Assembly (NCBI GenBank): GCA_047495785.1
Contig: JBLDXI010000014.1
Span: 434,001 to 498,000, forward strand
Reading direction: 5' to 3'
Length of the DNA: 64,000 nucleotides
From: Lepidodermella squamata
Taxonomy: Eukaryota; Animalia; Gastrotricha
The number at the start of each line of letters is the position of its first letter. Position 1 is the stretch's first letter. Shown here in pieces: positions 19,080-52,946 of the stretch. Below the pieces are notes generated by a model. The model ran no database searches and was not told where the DNA came from. It worked only from the letters and a program-made list of their open reading frames with translations. The position numbers and the translations under genes are program-made.

Positions 19080-20605
19080 ATGTTTAAGGCCGTTCTAGTT
19101 GCCTGCCTTGTAGGCAGCGCTCTCTGTAAGTTTGCTTAATTTCTTCCTTTTTCCGGACACAATAATTTTGTGGTGAATAGCCCAGGGTTACTGGGGAGGA
19201 CAGCAGGTTGGTCAAGCTGGTCAAGCAGCCCAGCAGGGTAACCAGGGCCGCCAGGCGGCTGCGCAGAGCCAGGGTGGTTACGGAACCGCTGGTGGCGCTC
19301 GTGGCGCCCAGGCTGCACAGGCCGCCGATGCTACGGCCGAGGCCCAAATGTCGCAACATGGTGCCCAAGCATCGCGTGTCGAAGCTTCGGCCGCTAATAA
19401 CGCCGAAGCTGTCGCCGGCGTGCGCCGTCGCCAATCGGTTCTCCTCGCTGCCGATCAGGAGGAGGGTGCTGGATTCGAGGGCCAGGCCACGTCATCAGGC
19501 AGCGCTGGAGGAGGTGGTGCTCGTGCCGCTTCTGGTTTCTGCAACGGCATTCCTATGACAGGAAACCAGTAAGATTCAAATTAAGACGGCTAATCAACAA
19601 TATATCTTGAAATGTTTTAGACACCTTTGCTGCGATGGCCAATACTATGGCGTAATTATTATCAATAATCGGAGACGCGGAAATGAGTGTTTATTTTAAT
19701 TAGGATACTTGGTCAGAGCTTAGCTGCTGCGGCAACTCGGTTTACGACAGCCGATTTTACGGTAATATAAAAAAATTTGGTTAACCCGGAAATTGAACAC
19801 TGCTCTGCCGATAGGATGCAAGAACAACGTTATGGCGCCTCTTTACCGCCCGACCAGTCTTCAGTCTTCCGATCTTACATCTGCTGGTCTTCGGTAAGAA
19901 TTACTCCATAATTTTCGTATTCAATTAATCCAACTTGTAATCATAGCCCAACTCGCCTTTGCGGTAATTACGTCTGGCAAATGTACAACGCCCCGTACGA
20001 ACTCTGCTGCGACGGTGTTCATTACCCGAACCCGTACGGCAACTACGGTTGCTGCGGCGCCCGTGCCTTCGACTCGCGCTACTACAACTGCGGCGTAGGT
20101 TGAACGCGATGCTTCATTAACACCATGAATGACCGTTTTTACACGCCCACAGCATGATACTGTCAAGCAGAGGTGGTATGTTTACAAGCGCTCGACCTTC
20201 GTGCTGGCTGCCACTGAGGAGCTCGAGGCTGTCGGTTCGCGTAAGGAGTCTGGCGTTGGCCGCCTGACCGCCGAGGAGGGCGCCGTCAGTGGCTCGCAAG
20301 CGTCGGCTCGCGAGACCCAGGGACAACAGGCTGCCGCCGCCCAGCGCGAGGCCGAGCTCGCCGCCCAGGCTGGCCAGGCTGAGCAGGCTGCCCAGGCTGA
20401 ACAGGCTGCCGAAGCCGAGGCCGGAAATGGTTACGGAGCTGGTGCCAACGGCTATGGTGCTAACGGTTACGGTGCCGGTTACGGTAACAACTTCGGCGCT
20501 GCGCCTTTCGGCTACGGTGCTGGTATTGGCGGCGGTTTCGGTGGATATGGCCCTGCCGGAGGAGCCGTCCGTGGAGCTTTCCCTGTCGGTTTCGGCAAGA
20601 AGTAA
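19080..20605 (+). CDS. Secreted galaxin-like (di-cysteine repeat) protein with Ala/Gln/Gly- and Gly-Tyr-rich flanks
   Basis: Signal peptide MFKAVLVACLVGSALS. Spliced 'LCCDG..SCCGNSVYDSRFYGC..LCCDGVHYPNPYGNYGCCGARAFDSRYYNC'. GYGA repeats. Ends FGKK-stop. Confidence 0.7.
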
Positions 20606-28288: not shown

Positions 28289-30458
28289 ATGTCTAATCGC
28301 CGCGTCGCCTCAAGCTCGTCATCGAACGAGGCATCAAATGACGCTCCAGCGGGCGGATCCAACAAGCGTGGGAAAGTTGAGTTTAAAGTCAGCTCATCTG
28401 TTCGGGTTGGGACGGCCGCCCCGGTTTTTCAGGCGTCAAAAGGCGCCAAAGCGACTACAGCTCAAGCTGATAGCATTTGGACTGTGGTCGATGAGAAAGA
28501 GGGTAGCAGTGGCGATGATGCGCCTGTGTTTTCAGTAACAGACTCAACGGTATATTACTGATTTATAAGCTGTTTCAATTAAGCTGTGTTTGATTGATTA
28601 AAGATGCCCGATGATGTAAATCCTCACAATTTGCGAAGTCATACATCACATCAACTCGATGAAGGCAAGAAATCATCGTCAGATTCGAAAAAGCGGCGAT
28701 CGAAGGAAAAAGAGGAGAAGTAAGCCCTAGCCAGTTTTGTCAATATCTTCCTAATGTTATTAAACCAGGAGCCACAAGGATAAATCAGAGACATCTAAAT
28801 CAAAATCTCACGCAAAGGTCGCGGATCCGAAGGATTCCAGCCGGCCACCGTCTGGTACCGGTCGTTCCAGTCAGTTGGAAAACAAAAGTGCAACTAATTC
28901 GCCTGTCGAGGAGCCAACAAAGAGTAAGAGCAGCAAAAACGAAGCGAAAAAATCGCAGAAGAAAGCGACTTCGCGATCGAGATCCAGATCAAACTCGCCT
29001 CGTCGTGACGGCAAAAAGAAGCGGAAGAGTTCAGTTGAACCGCCGAAGGATAGCACAAGAAAAAGGTCACGTGAACGAGATCGAGAAAGAAGCCGCTCTC
29101 CGCCTGAGGTTACCAAAAAGTCGAAATCTGGTAATGAAAAGCCGCCGAGAAGAAGTCGAAGCCGCAGTCGAGATGCTTCGGTGACTCCTGTTGAAGGCGA
29201 ATCTCGGCGCCGAGCTCGATCTCGCAGTAAGGACAGGGATCAGGCGATTCCTGCGAAAAGCTCACGCCGGTCGAATTCGAGAGAGCGGCGAGCAACTAAT
29301 GCTCAAAATGATGATGCGAGGGGTAAAAAGGATGAAGTCTCGGCGAAAACTAAAGAAACAGCTAGCGACAGCCGCCGCCCTCGTGATCGTAGTCGCGACG
29401 CGGAGAGAGACCGTCGCGAGAAGGGCCGGGAGAAAGGTGCTCGGGAAAGGTCTCGAAGCCGCGAAGCCCGGCGATCGAGTCGTTATCCAAGTGAATCTGG
29501 CGGGAGGGGGCATCGCAATGAATCTCCGCAGCGGTATCGCCGCGACTCGGTTTCGCCGAATAGGAACGAGCCGGAAGGCAGTTCAAAGCGAAAGTCAAGG
29601 CGAGAGTCGACCAGTGAAGCTACGAAGCGATCGGATAAAAAGAAAGATAAAGGCTCGATATCGCCTTCGACCGCTGCTCGGCGACTGAAAGACGCATCCG
29701 ATGATGAGCTAGAGTCGAAACTGGCGAAAATGGAGAAGCGGGGAGCATTGCTTGTTACGTCAGCGAGTGATCCGGCCCAGGAGGGTGGCTCCAATGTCGA
29801 CTGGACTGCATTTTCCCAGGAATTGGCGGCGATTCAATCTCACTCAAAGGTAATCAATTTAGTTTATGATTTATAATAGAACTTGAAGCGATATTTTCCA
29901 TTTTGAGCCATTGAAATTTGGTCATACCGGGCAAATACCGAAAATTACTAAACCAGTTACCATCGGCTTTTTTCGGAAAAAATGGTTTCGCAACTTATGG
30001 GACATAAATTCCCAGTTTTCATTAAAATTTTTTGAAAATTCATGAGATCTATATTTTACTTTTAGCCCCAAAACAACGGCAACAACCACAACAACCACGC
30101 TCTTTCTGGAGTTGAACTGATCAGCTCAATTGGCGTTGCGACGACCCTGATGTCCAAGCAATACGTCGAGAAGCTGTTCGAGGCGATTCGTGAAGTTTCG
30201 GGCTTTCAACAGCTATCCCCAGTTGCTGCCTTTCATTCGATGGAATTTGCGAAGCGCAAGGTGCACGCAGAAACTGGCATCGTGTTCCGAAACCGCCGCA
30301 ATTCGATTCCGTTACCAGCTGTTATCAACGAGCAGATCATCAGTGCCTCGTCAGTGCCTTTGGATGCATCGACGGCGCCTCAACGGACAGAGGTCGCCCA
30401 GGCTTTGCGAAAGCTCACGAATGAATGGACTTCCAAGTTGACTAAAATTGCTTTGTGA
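28289..30458 (+). CDS. RS/RE-rich nuclear protein with a C-terminal domain resembling ZC3H13/Flacc
   Basis: Spliced ORFs 28289-, 28875-29849 and 30066-30458. Long RS/RD repeats. 'VDWTAF...ELISSIGVATTLMSKQYVEKL..SPVAAFH' loosely parallels ZC3H13 'IDWSGL...VMLRVGISKKLAGSELFAKV..ELGALN' (recalled, unverified). Confidence 0.5.
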
Positions 30459-30677: not shown

Positions 30678-32109
30678 TCACCGGCGACGTCTACCGTAAG
30701 CACCTTGGCCGCCCATACCTGCTTCAAAACATGACATTATTGAAAGCCAAAAAACTAGACGATAATTTTACCTTGGTAACCGCCCTGGCTGCCTTGCCCA
30801 CCGTAACCAGGCTGGCCGCCCTGAGCACCGAAATTGTTACCACCGAAACCGGGCTGCGCACCATAGCCGGGTTGTGCGCCGAAACTGGGATTGCCCTGCG
30901 CGCCGTAACCAGGCTGGGCTCCCTGGGCGCCATAGCCAGGCTGAACCCCCTGGGCACCATAACCAGGCTGGACTCCTTGGGCGCCATAACCTGGCTGGGC
31001 CCCATAGTTGCCACTGCCTTGACCTTGGTATCCTTGGCCAGCGTAACCAGGCTGAACTCCAGGGCCGTAACCGGGTTGGGCACCGTAATTGCCACTGCCT
31101 TGACCTTGGTATCCTTGCCCAGGGTAACCGGGCTGAACTCCAGTGCCATAGCCGGGTTGGGCACCGAATGTGTTGCCTGGGCCACCAAAAGGGTTGCCGT
31201 AGTTGGGCTGTCCGGGTACATTTCCACCGACGCCAGCGTTGTAGCCACCAGCGGCAGGAGCAACGCAAGCTTTATTGCCGTACGCTAAAATAGGAGCGAG
31301 CATCATAATTCTTAAAAAAAAGTTCAGCAAAAATATAATTAAACTAACCAGTTGGGCAGCAGATTTTTCCGTAATAGCATTGCGCATTTGTGTAACAAGG
31401 AGTAGCTTGCTGACCATAGCCAGGCATTGTACCCGCACCAGGCATACCAGGCACTGCAGAGCCCGGCATGTTGCCACCCGCATTAGGCATGCCTAGTGAT
31501 TGGCCAGGTTGGTCTTCATCGGGTAGAATGTCGACTAGCTCTTTGATGTTTTGAGGCACGCGATCGTCAGCGAGCGATGGAGAGTCATCCTCGGCAATGT
31601 CGCGGCGTTTACGACCGTTGAAGCCACCATAACCAGTGCCTTTTATTAAGAAAAAATGATTGAAAGGTGGACAAATTAAAGCAATACTTACCTTGACCCC
31701 ACATGTTATTATTTCCACCCATCGGAGGCATCTGCTGCCCGAAGGATTGAGCCGGTGGGCAGTTGCCCTGCTGCTGCATGGTGTTCTGGCCGTAAGTACC
31801 CATGCCCATATTATTGACTCCCATGCCAGGCATACCGCCGTTCATCCCAGCCATGCCGCCAGCTCCCCCGACGCCCCCCATGTTATTGCCAGGCATTCCA
31901 TTCATTCCAGCCCAACCCATATTGCCAGCGCCCATGTTGCCACCTGACATGCCTCCGTTCATACCTCCCATGCCTCCCATGCCTTGCATGCCTTGCATGC
32001 CGCCTCCCATGCCTCCCATACCTCCCATACCCCCTGCCATACCTCCAGATTGGGAAGCTGACAAATGGGCCGTTGCCAGAAGGAAGATAGCAATTTTCAA
32101 CGCTGCCAT
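30678..32109 (-). CDS. Secreted split-WAP protein 1 with Gly-Met N-domain and (GAQPGYG)-type C-domain
   Basis: Signal MAALKIAIFLLATAHLSAS; GGM repeats; NCPP; RKRR; 'CYTNAQCYYGKICCPTAYGNKACVAP'; QPGYG repeats; last exon ends GAYGRRRR-stop. Confidence 0.75.
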
Positions 32110-32395
32110 TATTGAGGGCTCGATCAAAACTTGTAGGTATTAAAACATGTGAGTACAAGTAAAATGTTTCAACAAAATTTTCTGATTTCAAAACTGGCAG
32201 CCGTCTAGCTTGAGTATTCAAACACGCGCGAAAACAACAGAATGTCAATTTTGAAGTAAGCATCGCTATGTAACATGGCACCAGGATGGCAGGCACAGAT
32301 GGAGGGTCAATGACATGTGAACAGGATTTGTTTCTGGACCTCTCGGCTCTGGATCAGCTGAAATAACAATTATTTTCATTATTGTGAAGAAACAA

Positions 32396-33138
32396 ATGAA
32401 GCTATTAGTCGCATTATTATTTGTCTTAGTTGTCGGCATAGCTGCCTGGGATGAAAATATCGAAGATGACGATGGCGGGTTCGATCGAGCCGCTGCAAAA
32501 GCAACTCTATTATGCCCAACCATAGCCACACCTGATTTGACCCGAAAGCGAAGATGGGGTATTTATCATCGTTAACTTGAAACATATTTTCTATGTTCAA
32601 CCTGTTTTTTTCTCGTTAAAAGATGAGTATACCGCAGCGGATACCGGCGCCGAGTCTGACCTGGACCCCACCTCAGTTATTTCACCGTCGGAATTCATCA
32701 ATGACGATTTCGACCGAAAAATTAATTTCGAAGTTGATATCGGCGACGACAGTTCCGAAGACGAAGACGAAGACAGAAAGCCTGTGTCCGAAGAGCAGGT
32801 TCCTTACAAAATTTTGCCAAAGGTTCGAACAATAAATAGAATTTTACCATAATTGGTGTATTGTATTCTTCTAGGATAAATATACAAGCTCTGTGGCACC
32901 AGCAAAGGGGAAACCTGACTCATGGCCTGGTACTCGACAATGTTTAGGGGACTTGAAACTTTGTTCCGAGGACACGGAGTGCCGTGGGCAAAAATGCTGC
33001 AAGGTTCCAGGTAAAAAATTTATTCCATAACTTGTTTCATTTTTTTATGTTTCATCATGTCATTCCATAGGTACGACGGTGTCCGTGTGCATGCAACCAC
33101 TGGTTTGGTTTACAGATATCAAAAAGAAGAGGCATTAA
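32396..33138 (+). CDS. Secreted split-WAP protein 2 (acidic linker)
   Basis: Signal MKLLVALLFVLVVGIAA; LCPT; RKRR; Asp/Glu-rich linker; 'CLGDLKLCSEDTECRGQKCCKVPGTTVSVCMQP'. Four exons. Confidence 0.75.
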
Positions 33139-33680
33139 CACTGAATTAGAAATTTTTGTTCTGCGCTTTTGAGATTGTTCCACCTTTTGAGCTTTTGAGA
33201 TCAACTTTTTGATTCGATTTGATAAAACTTTGATAAAATAATTCGTTTGGTGACTAATAAATTTCTGAATCAGCTTATTCTGGATTTTGAATTTCAACTG
33301 GTATTAGAGTATAAAGAAGTGAGGAAATAATCTTGAAGATGAGAGCAAGATAAAAGTGCGGTTGAAGTCCCCAAACGTTAATTATTGGAACTTCAACCAC
33401 GGTGACGCGCGAAATGATGCGAAATACGACACTACCGCGTGTGTACGTGTGTAAAAACGAGAGCTCAGTTTTCCACCAATTTTTATTCTTTGTAGCAACA
33501 AAATTGGGACAATATAGTTATTTACCAACTCGCAGTTTGAAATTTCAGTTTGCATTTTGCAGTCGGCAGATACTGTGGTGAAAAAATTACGCGTTTAAAA
33601 TACGACTTGAATTGAAGTAACTATCGGGTAAGATAGATGACGAGAGTAAAACAATGAGGTAAAAACACATTTTTCAAAGT

Positions 33681-34238
33681 TTATGATGCTCTTGCTCGAC
33701 TTTTGGAATAATTCACTGTTGATCGTGGCCAAAATCCGCAGACTTTTGTTTTAGTCAAAAGTCTGAAGCCATTCGCAACGCAGCCATACAAACCGAATGT
33801 GCCGAGCCTGGTGGATAAATCAGTAAAACTTGAGACCTAAACAACCGAGTAAAATACTATACCTGGTACATTACAGCACTTGAAATGTTCGGCGCACTGC
33901 AAATCACTTTGGCAGATCGCGAGTGGGCTTTTCGAGCACATACTGGTTTTCTTCGCCCGATCTTCAGAAGCCACGTCGTTTTCCGCAACCTCTCCAGAAT
34001 AGTCAGGGTCTGTGGTGGTGGTGGTGAAGGTAGTTTTTCTGTCCAAAGAAAATCTATGCGCAGATTTGCCCGAGGCGACGTTACCAGAATTTCCGAAAAT
34101 AGGGCATAGTTTTTCAGCTAAGGAAAAATCTAAAGTTGAAAACGTTGAGAACACTGGTGGTTGGAACTTACTGGATACAGCGTCGAAAATACAGACCAGT
34201 GCCCATAAAAAGTACAGTAGCCCAATTTGAACTTTCAT
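33681..34238 (-). CDS. Secreted split-WAP protein 3
   Basis: Signal MKVQIGLLYFLWALVCIFDAVS; LCPI; linker; 'CSKSPLAICQSDLQCAEHFKCCNVPG|SAHSVCMAV'. Confidence 0.7.
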
Positions 34239-34525
34239 TTTTGACTACCAAGATGTGCCAAGTTTGCGTTGATCGAGTTGAGTAAGTTAACGTGGATTAA
34301 AATTCCAATGCAAGCAAAAAATATCAGCGTGTGGCGCGTGGCCTATTACAAAGCACGAGTCTTCCTTCGCGCCAAAAAAAACAAAGATAACAGTTGTTGA
34401 CTCCTGTTTTATTTATTTTTAATAGCTTTAAAAACAAGAAAGTGTCATCGAACAAGGATCTCCGATAAACTCGTTATAGCAAGAGAAAGATATATCAATA
34501 ACAATGAGTCCAATATGCAGATCGA

Positions 34526-35846
34526 TCAACGACGGCCCATACCGCCAAAGCCGCCCATTCCGCCAGGCATTCCACCCATGCCACCGCCCATGCCACCGCC
34601 CATGCCTCCCATCATACCAGGGGCACCCATACCACCCATGCCGCCCATGCCGCCCATTCCCGGAGCACCCATGCCACCCATTCCTCCCATACCTGGGGCA
34701 CCCATACCGCCCATGCCTCCCATACCAGGGGCGCCCATGCCACCCATTCCACCCATTCCGGGAGCACCCATGCCGTAGCCGCCGGCTCCACCAAAGTTCT
34801 GACCGGCGCCTCCCATTCCAGAGCCATATGCGACGGGCCTCATGCCTAAAGAAGCATTTAAAAGGTAAGATATTACGTTAGTTTGAAGCGAAAAAACTCA
34901 CAAACGAAAGCTCTGGTACCGGGAACCTCGCAGCACTTCATTCCACCAGCGCACTGAGCGTCACTAGCACAAGTTTGAATTCCCATATTGTCTCCGCCAT
35001 AACCGTTGGAGGAGCCATCATACGATGTACCGTACGCGCCGCCCAAACGGCCGTTGCCGTTGCCGTTGGCTGCATTCCCAACGCCTGCTCCTTGAGGGTT
35101 CGCATTCGCACCATCATTAGGCATAGCGTCTCCGGGCTTAATTAAAATAAAATAAACAAATAGGCGTCTCCATTTCACAGCTTACCTGGGCAAAATCAGA
35201 TCCAAGAGACACAACAAGATCGCTCGCGTCAGCGGCGCGCCGGGCTCGAACATTCAAGACGCCTGTCGTTTCGCGTTTTCGTCGACCATACCCGCCGGCT
35301 GAAACAGATAAGTAGCCAGTTATGAAAATGAATGGGGTTTCAACATACCAAAAGAGCCCGATCCAGTTGGACACATGCCGCCTGAAATGTAAAATCGTTT
35401 ATGAGAACAACGGAAGTTGAGGAATGAACGTACCGGACATCATGCCACCTTGCTGTCCGTACCCTACGCAGAATACAGTACTTTTAACAGAGTAAAATTA
35501 ATGTCGGTAACTTACCAGGTGCACCCATGCCGCCCATGCCGCCCATGCCACCATTACCCATTCCACCCATAACGGGAGCTCCCATGCCTCCGAAACCTCC
35601 CATGCCAGGGGCGCCCATGCCACCCATGCCGCCCATTCCGGGTGCACCCATGCCGCCCATGCCGCCCATTCCAGGAGCTCCCATGCCGCCCATGCCACCG
35701 CCCATTCCAGGAGCTCCCATGCCGCCCATGCCACCGCCCATGCCACCCATGCCACCCATTCCGCCCATGCCGCCCATGCCACCCATTTGAGCAGCGGCGA
35801 GCTGGAAAATCGGTAAGCCGAGAATGAAAACGACAGATATAAACAT
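34526..35846 (-). CDS. Secreted split-WAP protein 4 flanked by (GMGGMGAP)n repeats
   Basis: Signal MFISVVFILGLPIFQLAAA; GMG/GAP repeats; MCPT; RRKR and RARR; 'CASDAQCAGGMKCCEVPGTRAFVCMRP' (final Cys codon spans an intron); ends GGMGRR-stop. Confidence 0.75.
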
Positions 35847-38222: not shown

Positions 38223-39561
38223 TCAAAACCAGCGACCAGTTAATTGTTTGTGTTTAGCCATGTGAAGCTGGATTGCAGTAGAAATCTCAGGAGCTGTGCG
38301 ACTCCTGCCGTAGTAGTCGACAAAATGGCCATCCGGATTGATTAGATACATGATGATTGTATGGTCAACAATATAGTCTTTTTGTTCATCTTTGGGGCCC
38401 ATGCTGTAGTAAACACGGTACGCTTTTGAGACCTGTTTGATTTGCTCTTGCGACCCTGTAAGACCAAGCAGCTTCGGCGAAAATTCAGCCACATATTTTG
38501 CAATAACGGCAGGAGAGTCACGCTCAGGATCAACAGAAATAAACAATGGTTGCAATTTGGCCTTCGAACCAGCACCTTCGACCATGTTCACGACCTGAAC
38601 CATTTTTTCGATTTCATCAGGGCAAATGTCGGGGCAGTGGGTGAAACCAAAGTAGATCAACAGCCATTGCCCTTTGAAGTCCTCGCTTTTACGCGTTTTG
38701 CCAGTATGATCCACCAGCTCGAACGGGCCACCGATGTCAGCTTTTCCAAGAGATTTCAATCTCTCGCGTTCTTGTTCTGAAGTAAAAAAGGTATAGAAAA
38801 CCGATCAATAGATAGATGGCTCGCAACACGGTACAAATACAACAAACCTAACTGCTTCTGTTTGTCAAGATAATAAAGATACGCCCCGAGCGCCGCAAAT
38901 AAAGATAGGCCGATCGTCACTGACTTTACGGTGGGTCTCTGTTGCAATACAATTGAATAATATGTAAGACTTTATCAAATCAACGAAATCGATGGATTTA
39001 TGTGTTTCAGTGCGTTAATTTTTATAATTGTATTTCTTAAGCGTTTGGTCCGATATATTTGTACCGTATCACGCCCTAATCACTATAAAAATGTAAACCT
39101 TTGCGTCTCAGATATTTAAGCAATTGAGTAACAGCCGCTAAAATTCCGATTCCACCGAAAGCATACAAAACCATACGCCAAGTCACAATCTAGGAATTAA
39201 ATTGGCCATTTTCAAATTAGTCAAGTGACCGGAGTGCCTCATCAGACCGAAAATTACTTTCAAGTTGTTCTAATACTCACCCCAACTTTCGGACGATTGT
39301 TAGGTCCGCCACTGTTAGTTTGCTGCTGATCGGTGTGTTGATAACTGACTGGTTGCGAAATAAGACAACTAGGCTGAAGTAGCCGACGAGCGCTTAAACC
39401 AGAAACAACATATGATTGATTTTGTAAAGAGATCGGTTTAAAGAAACCAACCTCAATGTGACAAGACTGAAGCCACGTCCAGTTGAAAGTAAGTTAACCG
39501 TGCGATGGTTCAGTAACAAGTTTGACCTTAGCCGAGGTATCACGCGTATTGCGAAACTCAT
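38223..39561 (-). CDS. SCO1: Cytochrome c oxidase copper chaperone SCO1/2
   Basis: Arg-rich presequence MSFAIRVIPRLRS, a TM segment, 'IGGPFELVDH', 'YFGFTHCPDICPDE', 'YIVDHTIIMYL'. Confidence 0.93.
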
Positions 39562-39600
39562 TACGAATAATAATCCTAAAAATCCAAATAGAAAGTTGGG

Positions 39601-40006
39601 TTTCCGCCTTCATGAGAGGATCAATGGGCTCTGACTGATACCCATGGAAATACGAAAGTAATCGCAGGCGAGCCCGGCGGCACTGGGTCGCAGACCATTT
39701 CTTAGCTGGATAATTATCTCGCGCATACTTTTGATAGAAGGCGATCTTTTGGCTTCAGCATGTGAACTTTTTCCTCTCACCTCATCATATCTTAAACGCA
39801 GATTCACCATTCATTGTCAAGCTTGTCCGAACTCAATGAACCACGCACCATCCGCCGAGTAAGTACCTCAAGTTCACTATGAAATTAATGGGGCAAACAG
39901 AACGCCGTAGTAATAAAAGCTGACGCGACCCCGCTATAATCTTGCTCTCGTCCCGGAGACTCCCATTCGCCCGGCGGGATGAAGGCGGGAGGGCGAAGCC
40001 GGTCTC
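39601..40006 (+). ncRNA. Candidate structured RNA of unknown family
   Basis: Nested inverted repeats: 39601-39613/39979-39991 (13 bp, 2 G-U on +), about 39684-39690/39924-39930, about 39762-39769/39870-39877, plus a 3' hairpin at about 39956-40006. Confidence 0.3.
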
Positions 40007-41047
40007 AAGAACTGAAATGTCGCATAAGTGAACCGAACAAGGTCAAAATTCGAACGCGCCTTTTGCGCGCTAAAAATTCAAAATTGCAAAAACCGAAAAA
40101 TTCTTACACAATTTATATTTCAGATTTCGAAAGTTGCAGTCGTTTATAGTAAAATATGTCAAAAAAAATATGTTTGCAGCTTGAATTTTGATTTTTAGTG
40201 ATAATCGTGTCGCCGCTCCTGAATTCGCTGTACGCCGCAAACCTATATTTAGTACGTCGCACCGGACAAGTTCGCTGTTCAATGTTCAATGTCGCGTTGT
40301 GGCAAGTTTCAAGCCTGAAGAATATAATTTCCTAAACCTACCCTAACGGAGATGAAAACATTTTCCTGGATGCTTGGGCACAAATCACAAATAAAAAATC
40401 CAGCAGAGTTCGGTAGCTTCTGCTAAGGTGCCGTCAAAATAATAGGATTGGGGAGAACGACGCCAGTCTTGCCGAACTCTTGGACATCTAATCATCCCCA
40501 CATCTCCGCTCTCAGCCACTGCATGTTGCACGTAACTTACATACTATCATCGTTGTTGTCTTCTTCTGGGAAAATTAGGCTCTTAGTTCAGCGCGAACCG
40601 GCTTCTTCAACATTCGAACGAAGCCTTCCTTGTTTCTTAGCTCTGAGCCCTGTGTGCAACCTTGCCTTGTGCGGTCAATGAAACGTTATATTTTAGCAAG
40701 CAATGTTTTATTTCAAAAAAGTAGAGTTAAGCACCGGCCACGGGTGGTCTTATGGCGCATCAGACGTATATAACTTGTACTTTGTATTTTATATTCCTGA
40801 CTCCTGACTCGCTCTAAACTGGATCATATGCATGGCGCCTGGCGCGACCATTAGGCTTTCTTATACGAGTTCTGACAAGGGCTCATTTCAATATCTGCTC
40901 AATCATACTTACTCTTAATTCCTCTGTCAGATTCGTTACCTTGTTGTTCTACTTTTGGGGAATTAAGCTTTTGTATGCAGTAGGAAACGGAAATTACTTA
41001 TTTATTTCAATGGTATTTAATACATAGTGTCATCTGAGTTTTACACC

Positions 41048-42809
41048 ATGTCTGGGGAGCCGCGCTTGTACTTGAAAGCTGATGGTTCAGTGGTAAGTTA
41101 AATTGAATTTTGACCTGGAGGAAGAGATCTTACTAATATCGCCTTGCAGGTGTCAGGGGCCTCAACAAGTAAACTTATGGCTGCTGTTTCTCAGCCCACT
41201 CAGCCTACAAGAATATCAGCATGTGAGTAAAGTGCGCCTCCTTTTTATCAGTACTTTAATTTCTTATTTTGCCAGCAAGCCTTACCGTTCTCAATGCTCC
41301 CAAGGAACGAAAAGTCATTTATATAGCTCCTGTAAGTTCAATTAAGTATGCGCAGTTTAAATTCACTCGGCTTGATGTGTCTAGGTTGACTCGCGTTCGA
41401 TAGCTGGTACCAGTGGAGCTAATCAGATTAACAGAAATATGATACAAAGCAGCTCTACCCCACCGAGAACATCTTTTGAAGGTGGAGTTGCCACCATCAT
41501 CAGTAATCCCGTAGCACCCGGTGGTTCTGCACGAAATCTGGCTGCCGCTTTCCGTGTAACACCTGCCCGTCAAGTTCAGAGTACCTCTCATCCTACTCAA
41601 AGTTCTGAACATCCCTCTCAGTCCAGTTCTCGAGCTGCCTCCAACCGGCCTTTGGGATTGAACCATCAATCTCTAGGGCAGATACCATTAAATTTGAACT
41701 CGAGCGGAAGTGTTGCATCGCGACGAGAGAAATCCAGCAAAGGATTGCGGCACTTCGCAATGCGCGTCTGTCAAAAGGTCCGGCAAAAAGTAGTAACATC
41801 ATACAACGAAGTGGCAGATGAACTAGTCGGGGAAATGAGTGATGGATCTCATCAATCGCAAGCTGAAAGAGTAATTTCTAATTAATGTTGTGATAACAGA
41901 AAAATTACCATACCAAATTATTTTTCCAGGCTTACGATCAGAAAAACATCAGGCGTCGGGTTTACGATGCGTTGAATGTTTTGATGGCGATGCGTATAAT
42001 AGCGAAAGAGAAGAAAGAAATTCGGTGGTTGGGTTTGCCTACCAATTACGAAGAGAGGTACCGTGAAATGGAGGACGAGAAAAGAGCTGCTCAAGAGCGA
42101 ATTCGTGCCAAATTTCAAAATGTGCAAGAACTGCTGTTGCAGCAAGTTGCAGTGAGGCAGCTTATTGAGCAGAACAAAAGCCGCGAAGTTCAGGAAGGAG
42201 GCCCGCCTTCATCAGACACCTCGCTGCGTCTGCCATTCATTGTTGTTAGCACTGTAAGAGCCGAGAGTCGCTTTCAGTACCTGCAGACTATTAAATTGTT
42301 TTTCTTGATAGGGTCGACGTGCTGTGATTGATTGCAGCATTTCTGCTGATCGCCAGGAGTATGTTCTAGCGATGGACCAACCCTTCGAGCTTCAAGACGA
42401 GACAGACGTGATGCGCCGAATGGGGTTGACTCTTGGCTTGGACCAGCCAGGTCGGTGCACCGATGCATCAATGGAGACAGCTGTTCGGCTAGTGCCTCCG
42501 CTTATGGAGCCCTTCATTCGCGAGATGGGTCGTTCCGGAATAAATGGCCAAGCAGCAGTTGCAATCAGTGCGAATCTGCGGATCCCCGAGCTGCCTCAGT
42601 CAGTTAATCGGCAGTTATTCGGGAACTCGAAGTCTGGTCTTCCAATGATGGGATTGGCTGATGCCCTCGGCAAAGGCGGCAGTGGTGCAAATGGCGAGGA
42701 CGATGATCTCGACGAAATTGAAGATGAAATTGTTGATAGTGACGACGACATGGACGAGGACGAATTAGGTTCGGACGACGAAGACAGTAGGTTGTCAGGG
42801 GAAAACTAG
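41048..42809 (+). CDS. TFDP1: Transcription factor Dp (E2F dimerization partner)
   Basis: '[25 protein letters not shown]', '[34 protein letters not shown]', '[17 protein letters not shown]', acidic tail. Confidence 0.93.
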
Positions 42810-43780
42810 GCTATCATGTCGTCTTTTAGCCCCGAGATTCCAGATACGTATTTTTTGTTGTTAATACCTCTCAAAGCCTTGAAGACGTATATGACGCTGC
42901 ATACTGTCCAAAGTTGCCTTATCCTTACACGAACGATCGAATAATTATACGTGAAGAAACGGCTATTTAGTCTTTTTACTCCACTGCACCTATGTTGCAA
43001 CAATTATTTGTAAATATCTATCTATTAATATCTATAATATCTATATACAATATTATGAAATATATATATATTCATGAAATTAACGTTATTATTGTGAAGT
43101 TTTCTAGTTAGAACGCGGAGAGAATGTCAGAACGCATCATTATTTTGACATTGGCAATTGACATTGTATCTCGTTTATAGGTTTTAATACGCAACTTTTT
43201 TGAAAGTAGTGAAATCTCGCGCGCGGCAATCTGAGCTCACGGCGTTGCTCGCCATTATTGGTTTTGCGCTATCATTATTATCATTGTAACCCCCGAAATA
43301 TACCCATCATCTATAAATCTATATAAATTTGGAAAACTATTTGCTCGCTGTAAAATACAGATAATGTTTCCTTATGTTACGTATTAACATTATTACACCT
43401 CGATGCACCTTTTTACAGAAACCAAGTGCCTCCATTTTCTTCTTGTCGGCTGTTTGTAACAATACCTAGTGAATGATTCCTGCGAAACAGTTTCTGAACA
43501 AAATTTATTACCATTCGATATATTTGTATAAAATCGGAGATAATGATGACTCTTTTTCTCTCATTTGATTTGTCCACTTCGGGTTTTTTCTCGTTCGTCC
43601 ACTGCTTCTATCATTGTACGGTAAAATAATAATTATTTCGTTATATTTCTTGGCGAGCTATACGTCATCAACAGCATCATAAAAAACATCGTCGTTTATA
43701 CGATTTTGCGCCAATTAACAGAATGTTTAATAAATGATGGATGAATGACTTGCATGTTTTTATTTTAGAGTTTTATCAAA

Positions 43781-46104
43781 ATGCCGACAAAGGAAAAAGA
43801 GAGTAAATCAACTCTGGCGAATAAAATCGCAGAGATGGATCCGGAATTCGCGGAGTTTTTGAAATCAGAGGACCGCGATTTATTGGATGATTTGGGCGAG
43901 GTTGACGACGTCGATGCGGCGAGTGATGCCGAAGAGAGCGATCTCGACTTGGGCGATGAAAGTGAGGACGAAAATGAGGGCGATGAAGAGGCTGAGGAGG
44001 CTGAGGAAGATGAGGACGATGAGGATATCGTGCCACTTTCAGACGAAGAAGATGCCGATGAAGAAGTCGACATTCGGAAACTGGTCAAAGGAAAACGCAG
44101 TAAGGAGTCGAGTAAGCGAAAGGCCTCAGATCGAACCTTGTCTATGCAGCAGATCAATGACTGGGCTGAAGCGTTGGGTATCATCGTCTCGGGCGAGGCG
44201 AATGAAAAAGGAGCTCGGCAAGTCATTGAACAGATAGTCGCTGCTTTACGTTGCGCGGCTGATAAAATCAAACCGGCGAAGAAAGGCGACCGCGATCCGT
44301 CGGAGGGCAAGAAGAAGAAACGCTCCAAGCGTGGCGATGACGACGAAGATAACGACGAAAGTGACGTAGAAAGCGAGGATGAAGAGGCCGATCCGAAAAA
44401 TAAGCGGAAATCTGCTAAAAACAAGCGAGACACCGATTTTTTCTCAAAAATGTTTGAATACGTCGGGGCCCGTGAATTTCACGCCGTAGTCAAATTGTGC
44501 ATCAGCCAATTGGTCCCGGCATTCCTCGCAGTTTTACGCGGGGATGCGAAACCGGAGAATGAGTCGAAGAAGGCTAAAGGGATGCTCCAAAACGCGCATC
44601 AACTCCGCTGTTCGCCGAGCTGGTCTCGGCTGAAATTGTCCCTTCGCGTCTACATTGAAACCATCGTTGATTTGGTTAAATTTACTTCCGATGAATCAGT
44701 TGCTACAGAATTGCTTGCTCATTTGAATACGGAAGATGCTCAAACCTTAGTTTTTGCCCTACCCTCCACCCGTCGTACTTTAGTTCAAACGGTAGTTTCG
44801 ATCTGGTCGAAGGGCAGTTTAATCACGTCAACTGCCCTACTGGAACAGTGTCACTCGTTGATATTGACCACCGTTCGGAATTGCCCGGCTGCGAAAGTGG
44901 TCGTGCTCTACGAGCGAATTTTCCGCAGGCTTTACCGCGCTTTCATGGCCGCGTGTAAATTCAACGCGAAACGCGCCGATGACGCATCGCTGCAGATCGC
45001 CCTAGCCATGAGGAACCAGCTGACCAGTTTTGTCCTGTCAGCGCCGTTACCCGCAACCGCCCATGCACTGGCTTTTGTGCGTGTTCGCCAACTCTGCGGC
45101 CAACTGCGAGCCGCCTTATCAGCTGCGTCGTCCGAGACCCGCGCGAAATCGACTAAAGTTGTATTGTCTTGGCCGTTTTTGCGCTGTATTGACTTGTGGG
45201 TTGAGGTAGTCGCGACGTCGCCGGAGGGTCACGCCGTCCGACAGTTGGTCTACCCGCTAACTCAGCTGACGATCGGTACCGCCCGCCTGCACCCATCGCC
45301 CCGCTACTACCCGCTCAGATTCCACTGCATTCGATACCTCAACAGACTAGCCCTGGCTACCAGGACGTTCATTCCGACCCTATCGCTGGTTCTGGATGTG
45401 TTTTCGATTACGGATTTCAACGCTGCTGCTAGCAATAAAGGTGTAGCGGCGAAAAATGACGAGCGCAGAATATCGTCGCTGACTCACCTGTTGCATTTCT
45501 CCGAGTCCCAGCTGCACGATTCCGGTTTGGAAGGCGGCATGCTTGATGCTGTTGTCAATGATTTGCTGTATTTCGCTTCGGCTGAAATTCTAGCGACTTA
45601 TGCTAACCGGATTGCGTTTCCCGAACTCGCCATCGCGCTGATTGTCCGATTGAAGAAATTTATTAAGGTGGGCTATTTTTAAATTTAATAACCGACTTTT
45701 TTTACTTTTTTTTCTTCCAGGCATGCCACGTTCCCAGGTTCGCCGAAAAGATGAAGGTTTTGTTGCAAAAAATCGAAGAAAATTGCAAATGGATTGAAAC
45801 TCGTCGCCGCTCAAACACGGATCTTCATCCCGCGAATTCAGGAGCATGTCAGACTTGGGAAAACGAGGCCCGTGCAGCTAACCCACCTATGGTGCAATTT
45901 TTCGACCGAATCAAGGCTACATTAGCACTTGTTAACCGAGCTGCTAAACAAAAGACTGCTTCCTCAGATAACCAAACTGCTGAAAATCGGAAACGCAAAT
46001 CTCCGATCAAATCCGAACCCGGCAAACACAGTGGCGGGAAGAAACATTTCAACAAGAAATTTCAAAAGAACAAGCCCAAAAAGATGAAGCGAGAGGTTGC
46101 TTAG
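43781..46104 (+). CDS. NOC2L: Nucleolar complex protein 2 homolog
   Basis: 'DPEFAEFLKSEDRDLL', acidic N-region, 'LVYPLTQL..P.PRYYPLRFHC', 'IAFPELA..RLKKFIK'. One intron at about 45668-45720. Confidence 0.9.
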
Positions 46105-46259
46105 TACTTGGTGCAAACTTTAAATAATAATTGTTGGAGATTGGAAAATAAACAATTTATTCAAAGCAACGTTTAATTGTTTTGCGTTTACACATGATTG
46201 CATCGAGGCGCAAGCTTCTCACATATGCATGCGTTTTATCGGCGCCAGTTTAAGACCTT

Positions 46260-48075
46260 TCAGCAGAGAACGCAAGAGGTGATACGGCGATCGTGGATAA
46301 TATCTTGAATGTCCCGGTCTTTCGTTTCGGGTAACTTGAATGTGAAAAGGACCAGTCCAGCAACACTGATAATCAAAAACGGGAGGAAAGAAAACTCTCC
46401 CAAGTATGGCTGAAAAATGAGCCGTGAAATTGAAAGAAAGTAATTTAAAGGCAATGAACTCACCAGTAGGACGTTCTCGAAAAGAAGTGCCACAATCACA
46501 GTTGAGGCCAAATTGCAAGTGCCTCCGATACTCGCAGCCGTAGCACGATACTCTGTAAAACTCGATGCTATAGTCATGCTCCAGAAATTAACCGCAGCTT
46601 ACCGCTAGTAAACAATTCGGAGGCGATGAAGTTGGGGACAGGCGCCAACCCCTCCGCAAAGCCAATGATGAACAAAATGACAGTAGCAATTGTGCCCCAA
46701 GCGAGCAACTTGTTTTCCGGATACTGCTTCGCAGCGAGCAGCAGAGCAATTTGAGCTACGACAGACAAGCAGAGCAGCAGATACGGTGGCAGAAGCATTT
46801 TTCTGCGGCCCAGCCGCTCCATAAGAGGCACACAGATGATAGTAGCTACTACGTTGATTGTGGACACGACAAGAACAGCGTAAGAAATCTCTTTGCCGAC
46901 CAAGCCGGCATTCTCATAGAGCGACCTGGCGTAAAAGAAGACTACATTGACTCCAGAGAGTTGCTGGCATGCATTTAGGGTCATGACAAGGATTATGGGC
47001 CACTTGGTATCGGGGCGTCTAAGGAAGAACAGCAAGCCACCTTCCTTCTTAGTTTGCGCCATGGCATCTTTGGACTCTTCACGGAGGGTTCGCATTTGAA
47101 CAGTAACGTTTTGCGTGCGGTAAAGTTTGATGAATGACCTATATATTTATTAAGGATGAATAGAAAAAAGTCATATAAAACTAATAAAGTGACTCACTCT
47201 TGTGCAGCTGTGTAGTCGCGTTGAATAACTAGCAACCACTTGGGACTTTCTTGAGCAATCGGCGATAACAACATCAGCGCAGAAACGGTGCAGAAAAACG
47301 ACTGAGCTCCAACTCCAACGGGCCATAGTAAATCAGAACCGAAGGAATCCTCCAGCGTAAGGGCGGTTCCAATTAAGATTCCGATGGTGATTGAAAGTTG
47401 GCTACACGCTCCGAAGGCACCGCGAAGATGGCGTGGGGCGATTTCAGTGACGTACATTGGGACGATCGCAAAGCAGGCACCCGAGGCCATGCCAGTGATA
47501 AATCGACTAATCATGAGCAATTCGACTGCGTTTGACATTTTAGAAATCGTTGCTAATAACGCTCCAATCAACGAGAAAATGAGCGTCAACAAAATGGCTC
47601 GTCGGCGACCCACTCTATATCATATAAAAATATTAAATATTTTCAAATTGTTTACATGATGACTTACTTGTCGGCTAATGGCCCAGAGACGTATGCGCCA
47701 AGAGATCCACCTAACGCGAAAAGAAGCACGATCACCGAGAAGAAGGCCGTGGTTGCCGTGTTCTCGGTATCAACGATGCCGTAGTGGTCTTTGATGGAAT
47801 ATCGAATGAAGTCTTTGATGTACTGAAAAAGTCGAGAGGGAGATAGAAATATTAGGTTTGATTGCCAGGAAATAGTATTATACTAACTGTAGCAGGGATA
47901 TTGAGGCATCCTATGTTATATCCATAAATGAATGGGCCGCCGATGAATGCTCCAGCTGCGGTAAACACCATTGGAAAAGTTGCGGAGGACTGTTGAATTT
48001 TTTTGGAAAATTATATAATTTTTTGAAATAAGAGGTAGAGCAAACCTTGACAACGATAACATCCTTGTCCGTCAT
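46260..48075 (-). CDS. SLC2/GLUT-like sugar porter, copy 1
   Basis: GRR loops, 'VPMYVTEIAPRHLRGAFG', 'ESPKWL', 'QQLSGVN', 'LPETK'. Multi-exon. Confidence 0.88.
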
Positions 48076-48857
48076 TTTGTATTTTTGAGATCTTAAAATC
48101 TGCAAGCAGAAAATGATATGTGATTGTTTTCTTCGGCTCTTTCGAACTATGGCGCAAACAACTACCCGGCTAATTAGCACTTGTTTACAGCGAATAGGTA
48201 TGAGAAAAACACGGGGACCGTCCACAAGGTTGCCACATTAAAAGCGGAATTTGTAGCTTTGACCATATGGCTAGGGAGACAGAAGATAAGCGGCCGCTTT
48301 GAGAAGTGGGCGGTTTTTATAAGCTATTAAAGATAAAATCAGGCAACATTCTAAAAATGCACACTATTTGCTTTTCCGGGAAGAAGCCCGCTTAAATTGA
48401 ACGGAAAGACGCGAAGCAATTTTCGCACCTCTATGCGAAATGTGGAAGAAAAATATCAAAATAGATAAGCAGGAGATATATATCTAGGTGAAATGCAAAT
48501 ACCTATATGCTTCATTTTACATGCAACGGTTGCAGCGGAAAATATATAGACGACACAACAATTTCTTCCGATGCAAAACTTTCTTGTTTCAGCCTCTGCA
48601 GCGATGACTTGGCTGACCTATAAGATTGGTAGACTTCGCGCAATAAATTTAAATAATTGGCACCAACCTTTAGACTTCCAGCTTTTTTCTCGTTGCTAAG
48701 GTATGTTGTCATGTAATACGTAGCGATATTTATTTCATTTTGAAAAGTTACGACATACAATTTATGCGAGGAAAGCTTAAGCAAGCTCTATTTTCCTTTC
48801 TTTTCTTCGCGTTTTCTTTGTTATTTTTTATTTGTTATTGCGGTGCGCTCTTGACTA

Positions 48858-50737
48858 CTACGCTTTGGTGTACTGCGGTTGGGAATATGGCACATAAGCG
48901 GGTGGTGGAGGTTGAAATGAATCGCCAGTGATGAGGTTCGTAGAAGACGGAATGACAGTCATGGCAACGTCCTGTTTTTCTTCGCTCTCCTCGGAATCTG
49001 GGCAGCCCAATTCGCGGTAGATGTCACTGATAGGTCGATTCTTTGTTTCTGGCAGTTTGATCCAGAAGAAGACCAAAAACAGCACAGAGCATACAAGGAA
49101 AGGCAAAAATGAATAGGTCTTCAAGTAAGTCTGAAAAATTAAAAGCAACATTAGTTCTTAGATCTTTGAATGCATCATTGTATAATTAACCTGCAAGACG
49201 TTTTCGAATAAAACCCCAACAAGCAAGGTGGCACTCAGGTTAACTACAGTTCCAATGCCGGCGCCAACTGCTCTCGGGCCAGGTCGGAAAATTTCGGAAG
49301 CGCTGAAGTTGGGGATTGGTCCGAGGCCCAGTGCGAAGCCGACGACGAAAATTGCGACGGCTACAATTGCAGCCCAACTCAACGCAAGTTTACCATCTTC
49401 ATCCAGCTCCAGTTCTTCACTGAGGGTCAACAGAACCACCTGGCCTACTAAAGCCGCGCACATTACCACCATCGGATAAAGCAGTAGCTGCCGCCGTCCG
49501 AAGCGTTCGATCATCGGCACGGCGAAGAGCGTCGCAATAACGTTGATACCAGAAACAGCAAGACCGGCGTAGCTTTGTTCTGCAGGGTTCAGCCCAGCTG
49601 AAGCGTAGAGTGAGCTGGCGTAGAAAAATACAACGTTGATGCCTGATAGCTGCTGGGCGGTGTTCAAAGTGATGACAAGAATCACGGGCCATCTGAGTTG
49701 GGACGATGTTAGCAGTTTCCAGAACGTCCATTCCTCCTGAGCAGCCCCGGGCGAATCGTTTTGAACGTTTGCTTCCTGTCTGATATCCGCTAACAAATCG
49801 TCGACATTGACGCGGTTGTAAAGCTTCTGCAGTGCCCTGAAAACAGCCTGAAAACATGATCAAATAAGCAAAAAGGCAAATAGCGAACTCTACTGCCGCT
49901 GCCTCGTCTTTCTTCACGATGAGCAACCATTTCGGACTTTCGATGGCGGCCGGCATCAACAACATGACAGCAGATAAGACGCTGAAGAAAGCCATGCAGG
50001 CCATGCCAACAGGCCATAAATCTACGAAAATGCATTGGATTCTCGGAAAAAAGATGATTGCTGACTGACTCACCTTCAGACCCAAGGGTGTCCTCAAGTG
50101 TGAAAACAGTCGATATGAGTATACCAAAGGTCATGGCAAGTTGGCTGCAGGCTCCAACCGCACCTCGTATCACTCGCGGAGTTACCTCAGTAGCATATAC
50201 TGGCACGATCGCGAAACAGCAACCGGATGCGAAGCCGACCAGAATTCGAGCTAAAAATAGCATTTCGAAGCTGTTGGCCAATTTGCAGGTGCCATATAAG
50301 ATGGCGCTGATCAACGCTACGAAGTGAGTCATTAATACTGAGCTTTTTCTGCCTAATCGATCGGATAATGATGCCGAAGCGAATCCTCCAATAGCCCCGC
50401 CGAGACTGAGCAGCAGTACAACTACCGACTGAAGAGCTTTTTGCCATGTTTCTTCGCCCGGCGCGTCGTATTGACCATAGTGCTCATACAGAGATGCGTT
50501 GATAAATATCTTCGTGTACTAAGGATATTAATGGGGACATTTAAACTTCAAGGTCAAATCATAAGCTGGCACCTTTCCTGGCAGGCCAACGCAGTTGATA
50601 TTCCAACCATAAACAAAGGGTCCGCCAATGAAGCAGGCGAAACCAGTGAAGACCATTCGAAAAGTGACATGCTATAATGAAAGCATGTTTTCCAAATAGA
50701 GAACAACTTTCAAAGTAATTACCTCCGTAATCCCCAT
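48858..50737 (-). CDS. SLC2/GLUT-like sugar porter, copy 2
   Basis: 'VPVYATEVTPRVIRGAVG', 'ESPKWL', 'QQLSGIN', 'ERFGRR', 'LPETK'. Confidence 0.88.
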
Positions 50738-51174
50738 TCTTTCACCTCACGATCAAATAATCACCTTCGAAGTGAACTCCTATAGAACTGCACTAAATGT
50801 TGTCCACTATAGCTGCGGGAAAATCGAGATAAGATTGTTGGTAATATGAAAGTGGGCGCGTTCCAAATAGACTTGTATATCCGCCAAAAAGCTGATGTTA
50901 GTTCAATTGAACTAGTTCTTGAACGCTAGATTATAGAGATTTTATCGCAGGGTGTTATATCAGGCAGCTGTGGCACGATATATTATGGAAATCAACATTA
51001 TCGTGCTGAAACTTCCTATCCCACTCCTTAATGTGGAGAGCCAAGGTGTTAATTAACGCCAATAAAACGAAAGTTGGGTGTGTTGAGGGAGTAGTGTGGG
51101 AATTTAAAATAGTCTCAAAGTTATCAACCTCTTTTATCACGGCGGAAACGGTCATCCTCTCATTATGCAGCAAC

Positions 51175-51602
51175 CTATAGGCCAGGGTGTGACGATGTCT
51201 TATCGTCTTTAACCTCGCATGTCTCAGCTAATGAGGACGAACTCGTTCTTCCTCTTCCTTCTCTTATCTTCCTTCTCTTCCATCTCTATCTTCCTATTCT
51301 TCCTTCTCTCTTCCTTTCTTCTTCTTCCACTTCTTCCTTAGGGCCGCGCTGGCCTCTGCGCGCGGCGCTCTTCCTTTTCTTCCTTTTATAGACGAATTCT
51401 TGCGTTTTCAGTCAATGACGAGCCAATCAGCTTTCGACACATTTCAATTCGAAAATTATTAAGGCGCATTTTTTATTATTTTGTTTGCAGTTTTACGCAT
51501 AAGGCGATTTCATTACTGCGTCGCACTCATACTGTGTGTGTTTGTTTGTCGACTGTCGACAACCTTCGAGACAATGTTAAAGCTATAGGCCAGGGTGTGA
51601 CG
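51175..51602. repeat. 20-bp direct repeat CTATAGGCCAGGGTGTGACG bracketing a pyrimidine-rich tract
   Basis: Copies at 51175-51194 and 51583-51602. CT-rich tract at about 51244-51387 with an internal gccgcgc/gcgcggc hairpin. Confidence 0.7.
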
Positions 51603-51985
51603 TAGAATGTAACATGACGTAGAATGTAGAGCGACAGATGACAAAAAAATGTGAACGGTGACCGAGGTGACCGAAAAAATGTCCATAAAAACCGGGTCGT
51701 TAATAATAAAAAAGATGAGTGAAGCTCCTATAAGCAGCTTTGCCAGAAATAAAAGCAGTGATGTGTGCAAACTCCAAACCCGAGTGGCCGGCTTTCTCAG
51801 TCGACAGGTCCAGTTGCTGCGCGAAAGGTTCGCCTCTGTCGCCTCTACACAATTTTTTATAATATAGCGACCTCCTTTAGCCATGTGACGTGCTATACGT
51901 CTATACGTTTACTTCACTTGCCATCAGCCTTCTAGCGCTGTTGTTAGTGAATTAGATGCCTATGCCGATTATCTGACGGTTGTCG

Positions 51986-52500: not shown

Positions 52501-52946
52501 AATTGTTTCAAAATCTCTTACCGGAAGTTGCTAATCTCGGCATTCTGAACCTAAATGAATGCAAGCATAATTTACACGTGAGCCAAATTCAAAGCAAAAT
52601 GTAAAAGGTCAGGTAAAGTGGCATTTAGGTCATTTTTAAGAGATTTTTCAACTATTTTAGTGGAAAAATCTAAATATTTGCCCGCATCGCTCGAATTAAT
52701 TGGTTCAAATTATATTTTCACCAAAGCAGCAGAGATGTTTTCTTAGCTTAGACACATCTTAGACACATCATAGACAAGCCAAAATTGACCCTATTGGCAT
52801 ACACCATTTATCAAAAATATGAGACAAGCATCAAACGCATGATGGGCGAAGTTGAGTTGTATTTCCTATCAATGTGAGCGTTCATTTATTTCACTATAAC
52901 ATCTAAATTCATTTATTTACGTTTCTACGTTTCATTTTGGTTATGT

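Follow-up and report, generated by a model that had tools for sequence, protein, structure and literature searches.

Four neighbouring genes with a common layout

We analysed a stretch of 64,000 nucleotides from the gastrotrich Lepidodermella squamata (GenBank contig JBLDXI010000014.1, positions 434,001 to 498,000; hereafter the window), in which positions 30678-35846 hold four neighbouring genes, g1 to g4, encoding putative secreted precursors related to WAP domain proteins. All four have open reading frames with canonical GT-AG splicing, through 13 introns of 49-64 nt in total, and share one layout: a hydrophobic, signal peptide-like N-terminus with no membrane segment after it, one isolated Cys-Pro, and a core of the form C-x5-C-x4/5-CC-x8/9-C. 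The features, with protein lengths in amino acids (aa), are as follows.

30678-32109, minus strand: g1 coding sequence (exons 31692-32109, 31349-31639, 30772-31284 and 30678-30718), 420 aa; in order, Gly/Met arm, Cys-Pro, RKRR, acidic linker, five-Cys core, Gly/Gln/Tyr repeat arm and terminal G-RRRR
31759-31761, minus strand: g1 lone Cys117 (G-N-C-P), candidate for a displaced WAP C1
31602-31613, minus strand: g1 furin-type site RKRR (aa 149-152), with Gly before it
31265-31397, minus strand: g1 five-Cys core (C221, C227, C233, C234, C243), split by the intron 31285-31348
32396-33138, plus strand: g2 coding sequence (exons 32396-32558, 32623-32822, 32875-33010 and 33071-33138), 188 aa; Cys40-Pro at 32513, furin-type site RKRR at aa 50 (32543-32554), a very acidic linker (net -14) and seven Cys in total
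32941-33090, plus strand: g2 C-terminal domain with six Cys, the extra C144 and the core C151, C157, C162, C163, C173
33755-34238, minus strand: g3 coding sequence (exons 34172-34238, 33863-34117 and 33755-33807), 124 aa, transcript end near 33469; Cys27-Pro at 34104-34106, no furin site, seven mature Cys
33788-33938, minus strand: g3 C-terminal domain with six Cys, the extra C83 and the core C91, C97, C103, C104, C114
34526-35846, minus strand: g4 coding sequence (exons 35516-35846, 35434-35463, 35349-35381, 35186-35298, 34902-35136 and 34526-34845), 353 aa; Gly/Met arms flank the knot on both sides, terminal G-RR
35371-35373, minus strand: g4 lone Cys124 (G-M-C-P), within a 33-nt micro-exon
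35237-35284, minus strand: g4 paired furin-type sites RRKR (aa 137-140) and RARR (aa 149-152)
34844-34971, minus strand: g4 five-Cys core (C225, C231, C237, C238, C248), its last codon split by the intron 34846-34901

Contigs from two public runs, X1 and X3, skip all eight introns of g1 to g3 (three in g1, three in g2, two in g3), and one of them has a poly(T) end; we thus take these runs to be RNA and g1 to g3 to be transcribed. The poly(T) end is the loose end of a contig at 33469, below an AATAAA signal, and sets the 3' end of g3. For g4, which is covered by X1 contigs although its splices are not among the joints listed, the reading frame is supported by the match to an orthologue described below. 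We discarded an alternative earlier donor in g4, by which the last cysteine would be lost, since this cysteine lies within a single exon of the orthologue. A six-frame scan of the window found no fifth core. An earlier note, made from the DNA letters alone, had described four spliced genes of common layout and named RNA-seq as a check of the splices; the gene rebuild, the contig joints of g1 to g3 and the g4 orthologue bear it out. The basic sites are also as it gave them (RKRR in g1 and g2, RRKR and RARR in g4, only RK and KK in g3), while the g3 end that it read as CMAV is CMAA.

The lone Cys-Pro and the five-cysteine core

An isolated Cys followed by Pro occurs in all four genes, the joint chance of which, judged from the Pro frequency, is about 1e-5. 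In g1, g4 and the orthologues of both (330-430 aa each), the five-Cys core is accompanied by exactly one other mature Cys. The six cysteines that had been counted for g1 and g4 are therefore correct, and are the same in both orthologues, but the matched set of four does not hold, as g2 and g3 have seven mature cysteines, the extra one lying 6-7 residues ahead of the core. The span from Cys-Pro to core is 55-183 residues across the family, with 103 residues in g1 versus 183 in its orthologue, and 100 in g4 versus 131. A near-equal spacing of 100-103 residues in g1, g2 and g4 was considered as a meaningful feature and rejected, given the 131 and 183 residues of the orthologues.

Conservation in a distant relative

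Since direct searches gave no relatives, orthologues were reached by synteny, via three ENA metagenome contigs bearing SCO1. Neither word-based searches with g3 and with the core alignment nor phmmer against 1.8 billion representatives found relatives, the latter returning only three repeat-protein artefacts. The JGI metagenomes held no relatives either (seven DNA-pattern matches were stop-flanked chance matches), nor did a phage search, and bacterial genomes gave one low-complexity match only. That these searches came up empty is partly due to exon-sized queries and the length filter. The ESM Atlas yielded a lead below 0.9 to WAP clusters, and no match for the g4 core. The SCO1 gene of the window is metazoan, and its best named matches reach 60-68%. 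In the metagenome contigs, SCO1 is 79% identical to that of the window and the gene order is the same (sugar transporter, Noc2, DP, SCO1). The orthologues of g4 (L010:1195-2342) and g1 (L010:3004-4413) lie directly after SCO1; g1 and g4 are neighbours in both species, and the 660 bp between the two orthologues contain no g2/g3-like sequence. The look into related genomes that the earlier note had suggested was thus productive for g1 and g4.

Both orthologues keep the same six mature cysteines. The lone Cys stands in the contexts G-Q-C-P and G-S-C-P (G-S-C-P-T in the g4 orthologue), compared with G-N-C-P and G-M-C-P here; this G-x-C-P context is found only for g1, g4 and their orthologues. The 12 residues around the lone Cys of g1 are conserved, none of 5000 shuffles being as good, also with the Cys masked. 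Alleles in the window's species alter residues beside the Cys-Pro but not the motif itself. Both furin-type sites of g4 are kept in its orthologue (RRKR and RDRR), and the g1 orthologue has G-RKKR plus RSKR. After these sites, each orthologue pair has a short conserved motif of hydrophobic and acidic residues (0 of 5000 shuffles for g1 and for g4), whereas a linker motif shared between the paralogues is not significant (360-4999 of 5000 shuffles). The linkers, described before as long and unrelated, are hence without significant similarity among paralogues, yet those of g1 and g4 each hold a motif conserved in the orthologue. Nine conserved islands together comprise 115 residues, of which 84 are identical; at 53 of these identical positions the codon differs. 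Arm sequences, arm lengths and the distance from Cys to core have drifted between the species. Altogether, purifying selection on the lone Cys-Pro, the furin sites and the six-Cys parity is supported for g1 and g4 by this comparison of sequences, and the orthologue conservation also supports a putative displaced WAP C1 and a predicted two-chain product for these two genes.

The exon structure of g4 has changed as well: there are five introns here, with micro-exons of 30 and 33 nt, and two in the orthologue (L010:1195-2342), at other positions.

A probable reduced WAP-type domain

In WAP domains, the cysteines pair C1-C6, C2-C7, C3-C5 and C4-C8, and G-x-C-P is the context of C1. We scanned the genes exon by exon with Pfam, where the gathering cut-off of WAP (PF00095) is 20.8 bits. 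The g4 exon scores 25.0 bits, and the cores of both orthologues pass as well (22.8-24.7 bits for g4, 22.0-26.2 bits for g1), while g2 (17) and g3 (18.1) stay below the cut-off and g1 has no match; the WAP likeness suggested earlier, for which this profile was named as a check, is thus supported by the profile for g4 and the two orthologue cores. The five-Cys cores align to the profile only from position 15, i.e. to its back part, and g2 and g3 from position 10-11, with their extra Cys taken as WAP C2. As the intron-free segment of the g4 orthologue aligns with profile positions 15-41 out of 41, right up to the last one, the final core cysteine corresponds to C8. All six cores show the spacing C3-x5-C4-x4/5-C5C6 with CxxDxxC and a terminal C-x-x-P, except that g1 has N for D and g3 lacks the terminal Pro; five of the six proteins have x5 before CC (x4 in g2), and Lys or Arg precedes CC in most. 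Nawaprin is the top PDB sequence match of the core profile (E 0.038), and a sequence look-up places an S-C-P at its residues 6-8. The model of the g4 core, the last four residues of which come from intron read-through, consists of a short helix and a β-hairpin (pLDDT, the predicted local distance difference test score, 79.6); its top Foldseek row is 6atu, and omwaprin, SLPI and nawaprin are also listed.

A canonical WAP domain has eight cysteines and four disulfides within 40-50 residues (PMC11408880); here there are six mature cysteines (g1, g4 and orthologues) or seven (g2 and g3). Neither do the proteins form a contiguous six-Cys domain in the usual sense, since g1 and g4 reach six only when the distant Cys is counted, and g2 and g3 have six contiguous cysteines plus one. 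Knottins have six cysteines with the doublet at positions 3-4; in the cores the doublet follows the turn, and the alignment with Hc3a places the doublet of the latter five residues earlier. In place of the ten cysteines, two sub-domains and AVIT N-terminus of prokineticins there is one five-Cys unit without AVIT, and the exon scans of g1 to g4 and the orthologues gave no Pfam prokineticin match. As judged from these patterns, g1 to g4 appear to carry a reduced WAP-like domain.

Predicted processing sites, linkers and arms

A motif R-x-K/R-R between cysteines that are predicted to be cross-bonded, as in two-chain precursors, is conserved in g1, g4 and their orthologues, present in g2 and absent from g3. 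Because these sites are conserved, cleavage by a convertase is likely, and for the g1, g2 and g4 products we predict it with considerable confidence. The two sites are only 12 residues apart in g4 (7 in the g1 orthologue), so that cleavage would release only a short peptide, while the acidic linker of 50-110 residues would remain part of the second chain. The earlier suggestion that g4 loses a whole internal peptide, as proinsulin does, was thus overstated. Net charge ranges from -4 to -14 in the linkers, which are acidic, and from 0 to +3 in the cores, which are neutral to basic.

The arms consist of 30-39% Gly and 7-17% Met, with much Met, Gln or Tyr. g4 contains the abductin-like GGFGGMG twice (for the abductin consensus, see PMC13052691), a motif absent from g1 and both orthologues. 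In g1, g4 and both orthologues, the first furin site and the terminal basic run each have a Gly immediately before them (31602-31616, 30678-30695, 35273-35287 and 34526-34537 in the window); amidation of both chains is possible, though Gly is abundant there. The Gly/Met/Tyr-rich composition of the arms, which recalls abductin and other elastomers (PMC13052691), points to an extracellular material. Within the repeat arm of g1 (30825-31140), the number of units differs between strains, as the contigs of X2 and X3 show by insertions, skips and back-jumps.

Proposed mechanism and evolution

Expression and splicing (g1 to g3), signal peptides, the cysteine pattern and, for g1 and g4, the cross-species conservation of lone Cys-Pro, convertase sites and core are established. 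On balance, we lean towards the explanation that the genes encode secreted precursors with a reduced domain of WAP type, in which a displaced C1 and a convertase cut would yield two disulfide-linked chains. The core of g1 and g4 would make the WAP bonds C3-C5 and C4-C8, the C2-C7 pair being lost, and C6 would bond the far-upstream Cys-Pro. A displaced C1 is the simplest reading, as the five-Cys core leaves C6 unpaired, there is just one other Cys, and this Cys stands in a C1-like context under strong constraint. An insert of 100-180 residues would then lie at the position of the elafin-type protease-binding loop. Inhibition by elafin and SLPI depends on the cysteine spacing of this loop (PMC11408880); with such an insert, the g1 and g4 proteins should not be canonical inhibitors. 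Furin or another proprotein convertase would cut the insert during secretion. Two chains tied by one disulfide would result: the N-terminal one, of about 11-13 kDa, rich in Gly and Met, and a second one with the acidic linker, the knot and the second Gly-rich arm. In the most speculative step, the products would be branched units from which an extracellular material (cuticle, egg coat or glue) is built, with cleavage setting the time of assembly.

The cores of g2 and g3 are nearer to that of g4 (44% and 43% identity) than to that of g1 (25% and 24%). Both genes lack arms, have one intron position in common and are without a counterpart at the syntenic site of the relative; for these reasons they look like later arm-less offshoots of the g4 line. 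Their seventh Cys may be a gain; it is probably used for dimers and could compete for C6. The full scenario, in which a gastrotrich WAP inhibitor domain became a convertase-activated disulfide clasp, giving amidated, branched two-chain units whose rubber-like Gly/Met arms would serve in cuticle, egg coat or glue, with seven-Cys members that switch partners or cross-link, is put forward tentatively and is itself doubtful.

Several observations weigh against the displaced C1 and the two-chain product. Both the bond and the cut are predictions. The flanks of the g4 Cys-Pro alone are not significantly conserved (1100 of 5000 shuffles), the segment being significant only when the Cys is included. 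In g2 and g3 the context is L-C-P instead of G-x-C-P, and g3 has no furin site, only RK and KK. Given the odd cysteine count of g2 and g3, their C-terminal six could close without the Cys-Pro, and these two genes are the main weakness of one model for all four. The earlier idea of a WAP domain with an insert after C1 accordingly agrees with g1 and g4, where lone Cys-Pro, furin sites and six-Cys parity are conserved, and is at odds with the odd count of g2 and g3 and the missing site of g3. Structure prediction is of little help: a single-sequence model of g3 spanning Cys-Pro and core (read through intron 1) has a pLDDT of 36, and the g4 core model matches WAP, knottin and prokineticin/Dickkopf about equally, none significantly (best E 1.6; best Z 3.4, a knottin). 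Where the model does not decide, the sequence features, i.e. the doublet spacing, the Lys or Arg before the doublet, its place after the turn, the C-x-x-P end and the nawaprin match, speak in favour of WAP.

Alternative explanations

The proteins could be antimicrobial or defence proteins of the crustin or waprin type, in which cleavage lifts the shielding of a basic Cys domain by the acidic linker or frees Gly-rich chains. Type II and VI crustins do couple a Gly-rich region with a WAP domain (PMC11767717), acidic spacers shield spider toxins (PMC6832493), and the linkers here are acidic while the cores range from neutral to basic. After the predicted cut, however, the acidic linker remains on the core chain, the net charge of the core is only 0 to +3, and the strict one-to-one conservation beside housekeeping genes is unlike fast-evolving immune clusters. 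We regard a defence role as rather unlikely; it can go together with the bond pattern of our favoured explanation.

Alternatively, the partner of the Cys-Pro may be the spare core Cys of a different molecule. Such head-to-tail (domain-swapped) bonds would build chains or networks, whether formed at the outset or through reshuffling after cleavage; disulfide reshuffling is known from cnidarian minicollagens. Head-to-tail bonding between molecules fits the data equally well. A disordered spacer of 100-180 residues and unconstrained length weakens the advantage of an intramolecular bond, elastomer-like arms need cross-links, the adjacency of g1 and g4 in both species would suit co-assembly, and g2 and g3 have a spare thiol. 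Yet a furin cut between Cys-Pro and core would leave only two-chain units, not long polymers, and folding in the endoplasmic reticulum usually closes intramolecular bonds first. We hold bonding between molecules to be unlikely.

In an ordinary pro-protein, the N-terminal part would be discarded, its Cys being a folding aid (the mechanism of the pro-region Cys in BPTI), a retention thiol or a homodimer bond, and the mature unit would be the acidic linker plus a small cysteine domain. The six Cys of g2 and g3 would then close among themselves (I-V, II-IV, III-VI), and the fifth core Cys of g1 and g4 would form a dimer. The even C-terminal set of g2 and g3, through whose extra Cys Pfam aligns (from profile position 10-11), suits this view. 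Six-Cys WAP domains occur in Trichuris and Trichinella (PMC5012510), and a pro-region Cys with a role in folding is known for BPTI (Weissman and Kim 1992, cited in PMC549202). Left unexplained, however, are the constant Pro after the lone Cys and its WAP-C1-like context, and the Cys-Pro of g3, which has no furin site; moreover, the N-terminal chains of g1 and g4 are long arms that resemble the C-terminal ones, unlike typical propeptides. We regard an ordinary pro-protein as quite improbable.

Least probable is a core from another disulfide-directed hairpin (the first prokineticin/colipase/Dickkopf sub-domain, or a knottin), with the distant Cys paired to the first Cys of CC. MIT1, the best alternative to WAP identity, starts C-x5-C-x4-CC-x11-C-x-P with CERDLQC (PMC8859281), near CQSDLQC of g3 and the x4 spacing of g2. 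MIT1 and Dkk1 superpose on the g4 core model at 0.8-1.3 Å across 26-29 residues, and the VIA list is headed by knottins. Against such an origin speak the x5 spacing ahead of CC, seen in five of the six proteins, the K/R that precedes CC, the C-x-x-P end and Pfam scores above cut-off only for WAP, as does the knottin doublet, which is formed by cysteines 3-4 and not placed after the turn.

Neighbouring features

The window has a GC content of about 45%. Further observations around the cluster are listed below.

38223-47900: SCO1, DP (E2F partner), Noc2 and sugar transporter, collinear with the metagenome contig L008:412-7971; from the SCO1 end to g4 there are 183 bp in the relative and about 2.4 kb here, with no evident gene between
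46200-59700, minus strand: at least four sugar-transporter genes in tandem, all of which match the one with which L008 begins
33285-33455: 169 bp, flanked by g2 and g3 with their 3' ends, that one X2 contig skips (ends TT..AA) and that contain a hairpin of 12 bp at 33360-33398; this may be a small insertion polymorphism
30150-30458, plus strand: open reading frame of 102 aa converging on the 3' end of g1, no Pfam match; the Arg/Ser-rich gene at 28875-29876 probably has its last exon here
20129-20605, plus strand: open reading frame without a Pfam match, its end made up of Ala/Gln-rich and Gly/Tyr-rich repeats; a further structural protein may include it as an exon
6931-7761, plus strand: exon with three DUF4215 repeats, then the start of a destabilase/i-type lysozyme domain

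Comparison with known systems

In the literature searched, we found no description of a split or two-chain WAP domain, nor of a gastrotrich structural or adhesive protein. With WAP proteins (PF00095; elafin, SLPI, nawaprin, omwaprin), g1 to g4 share the C-x5-C-x5-CC spacing, CxxDxxC, K before CC, the C-x-x-P end and the x-C-P motif; unlike in these, C7 is always missing, the putative C1 is 55-183 residues away with convertase sites in the gap, and the C2-C7 scaffold of the inhibitory loop is gone. The six-Cys WAP proteins of Trichuris and Trichinella (PMC5012510) are likewise a secreted, expanded family with three-disulfide WAP domains, yet those are contiguous and often tandem, and no long cleavable insert is reported for them.

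Among two-chain products, the disulfide mini-proteins of spiders arise by spacer excision (PMC6832493). CsTx-13 and omega-agatoxin-1A (PMC6832493), as well as proinsulin, resemble the products predicted here in the single precursor that folds before it is cut at paired sites, the disulfide-linked chains, the loss of a short spacer and possible amidation. They differ in having other folds (knottin, insulin), short spacers and no low-complexity arms, whereas here one inter-chain bond is predicted. Type II and VI crustins (PMC11767717) combine signal peptide, Gly-rich region and WAP domain as well, but their eight-Cys WAP is intact and C-terminal, and they lack an internal furin site, while the WAP of g1 and g4 is incomplete and internal. 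The likeness to abductin (PMC13052691), in Gly/Met-rich random-coil repeats, is compositional, and abductin has no WAP-like knot. Prokineticin/MIT1 and Dickkopf (PMC8859281) have a first sub-domain with five Cys of similar spacing, one of them bonded to a distant partner, but also ten Cys, an AVIT N-terminus and a second sub-domain, all of which are absent here.

If the lone Cys is only a propeptide thiol, the genes are an ordinary lineage-specific set of reduced WAP proteins. If, however, both bond and cut are true, the WAP fold can accommodate a very large insert within the binding loop and act as a chain-joining clasp, and the genes provide conserved, concrete candidates for gastrotrich cuticle or glue proteins.

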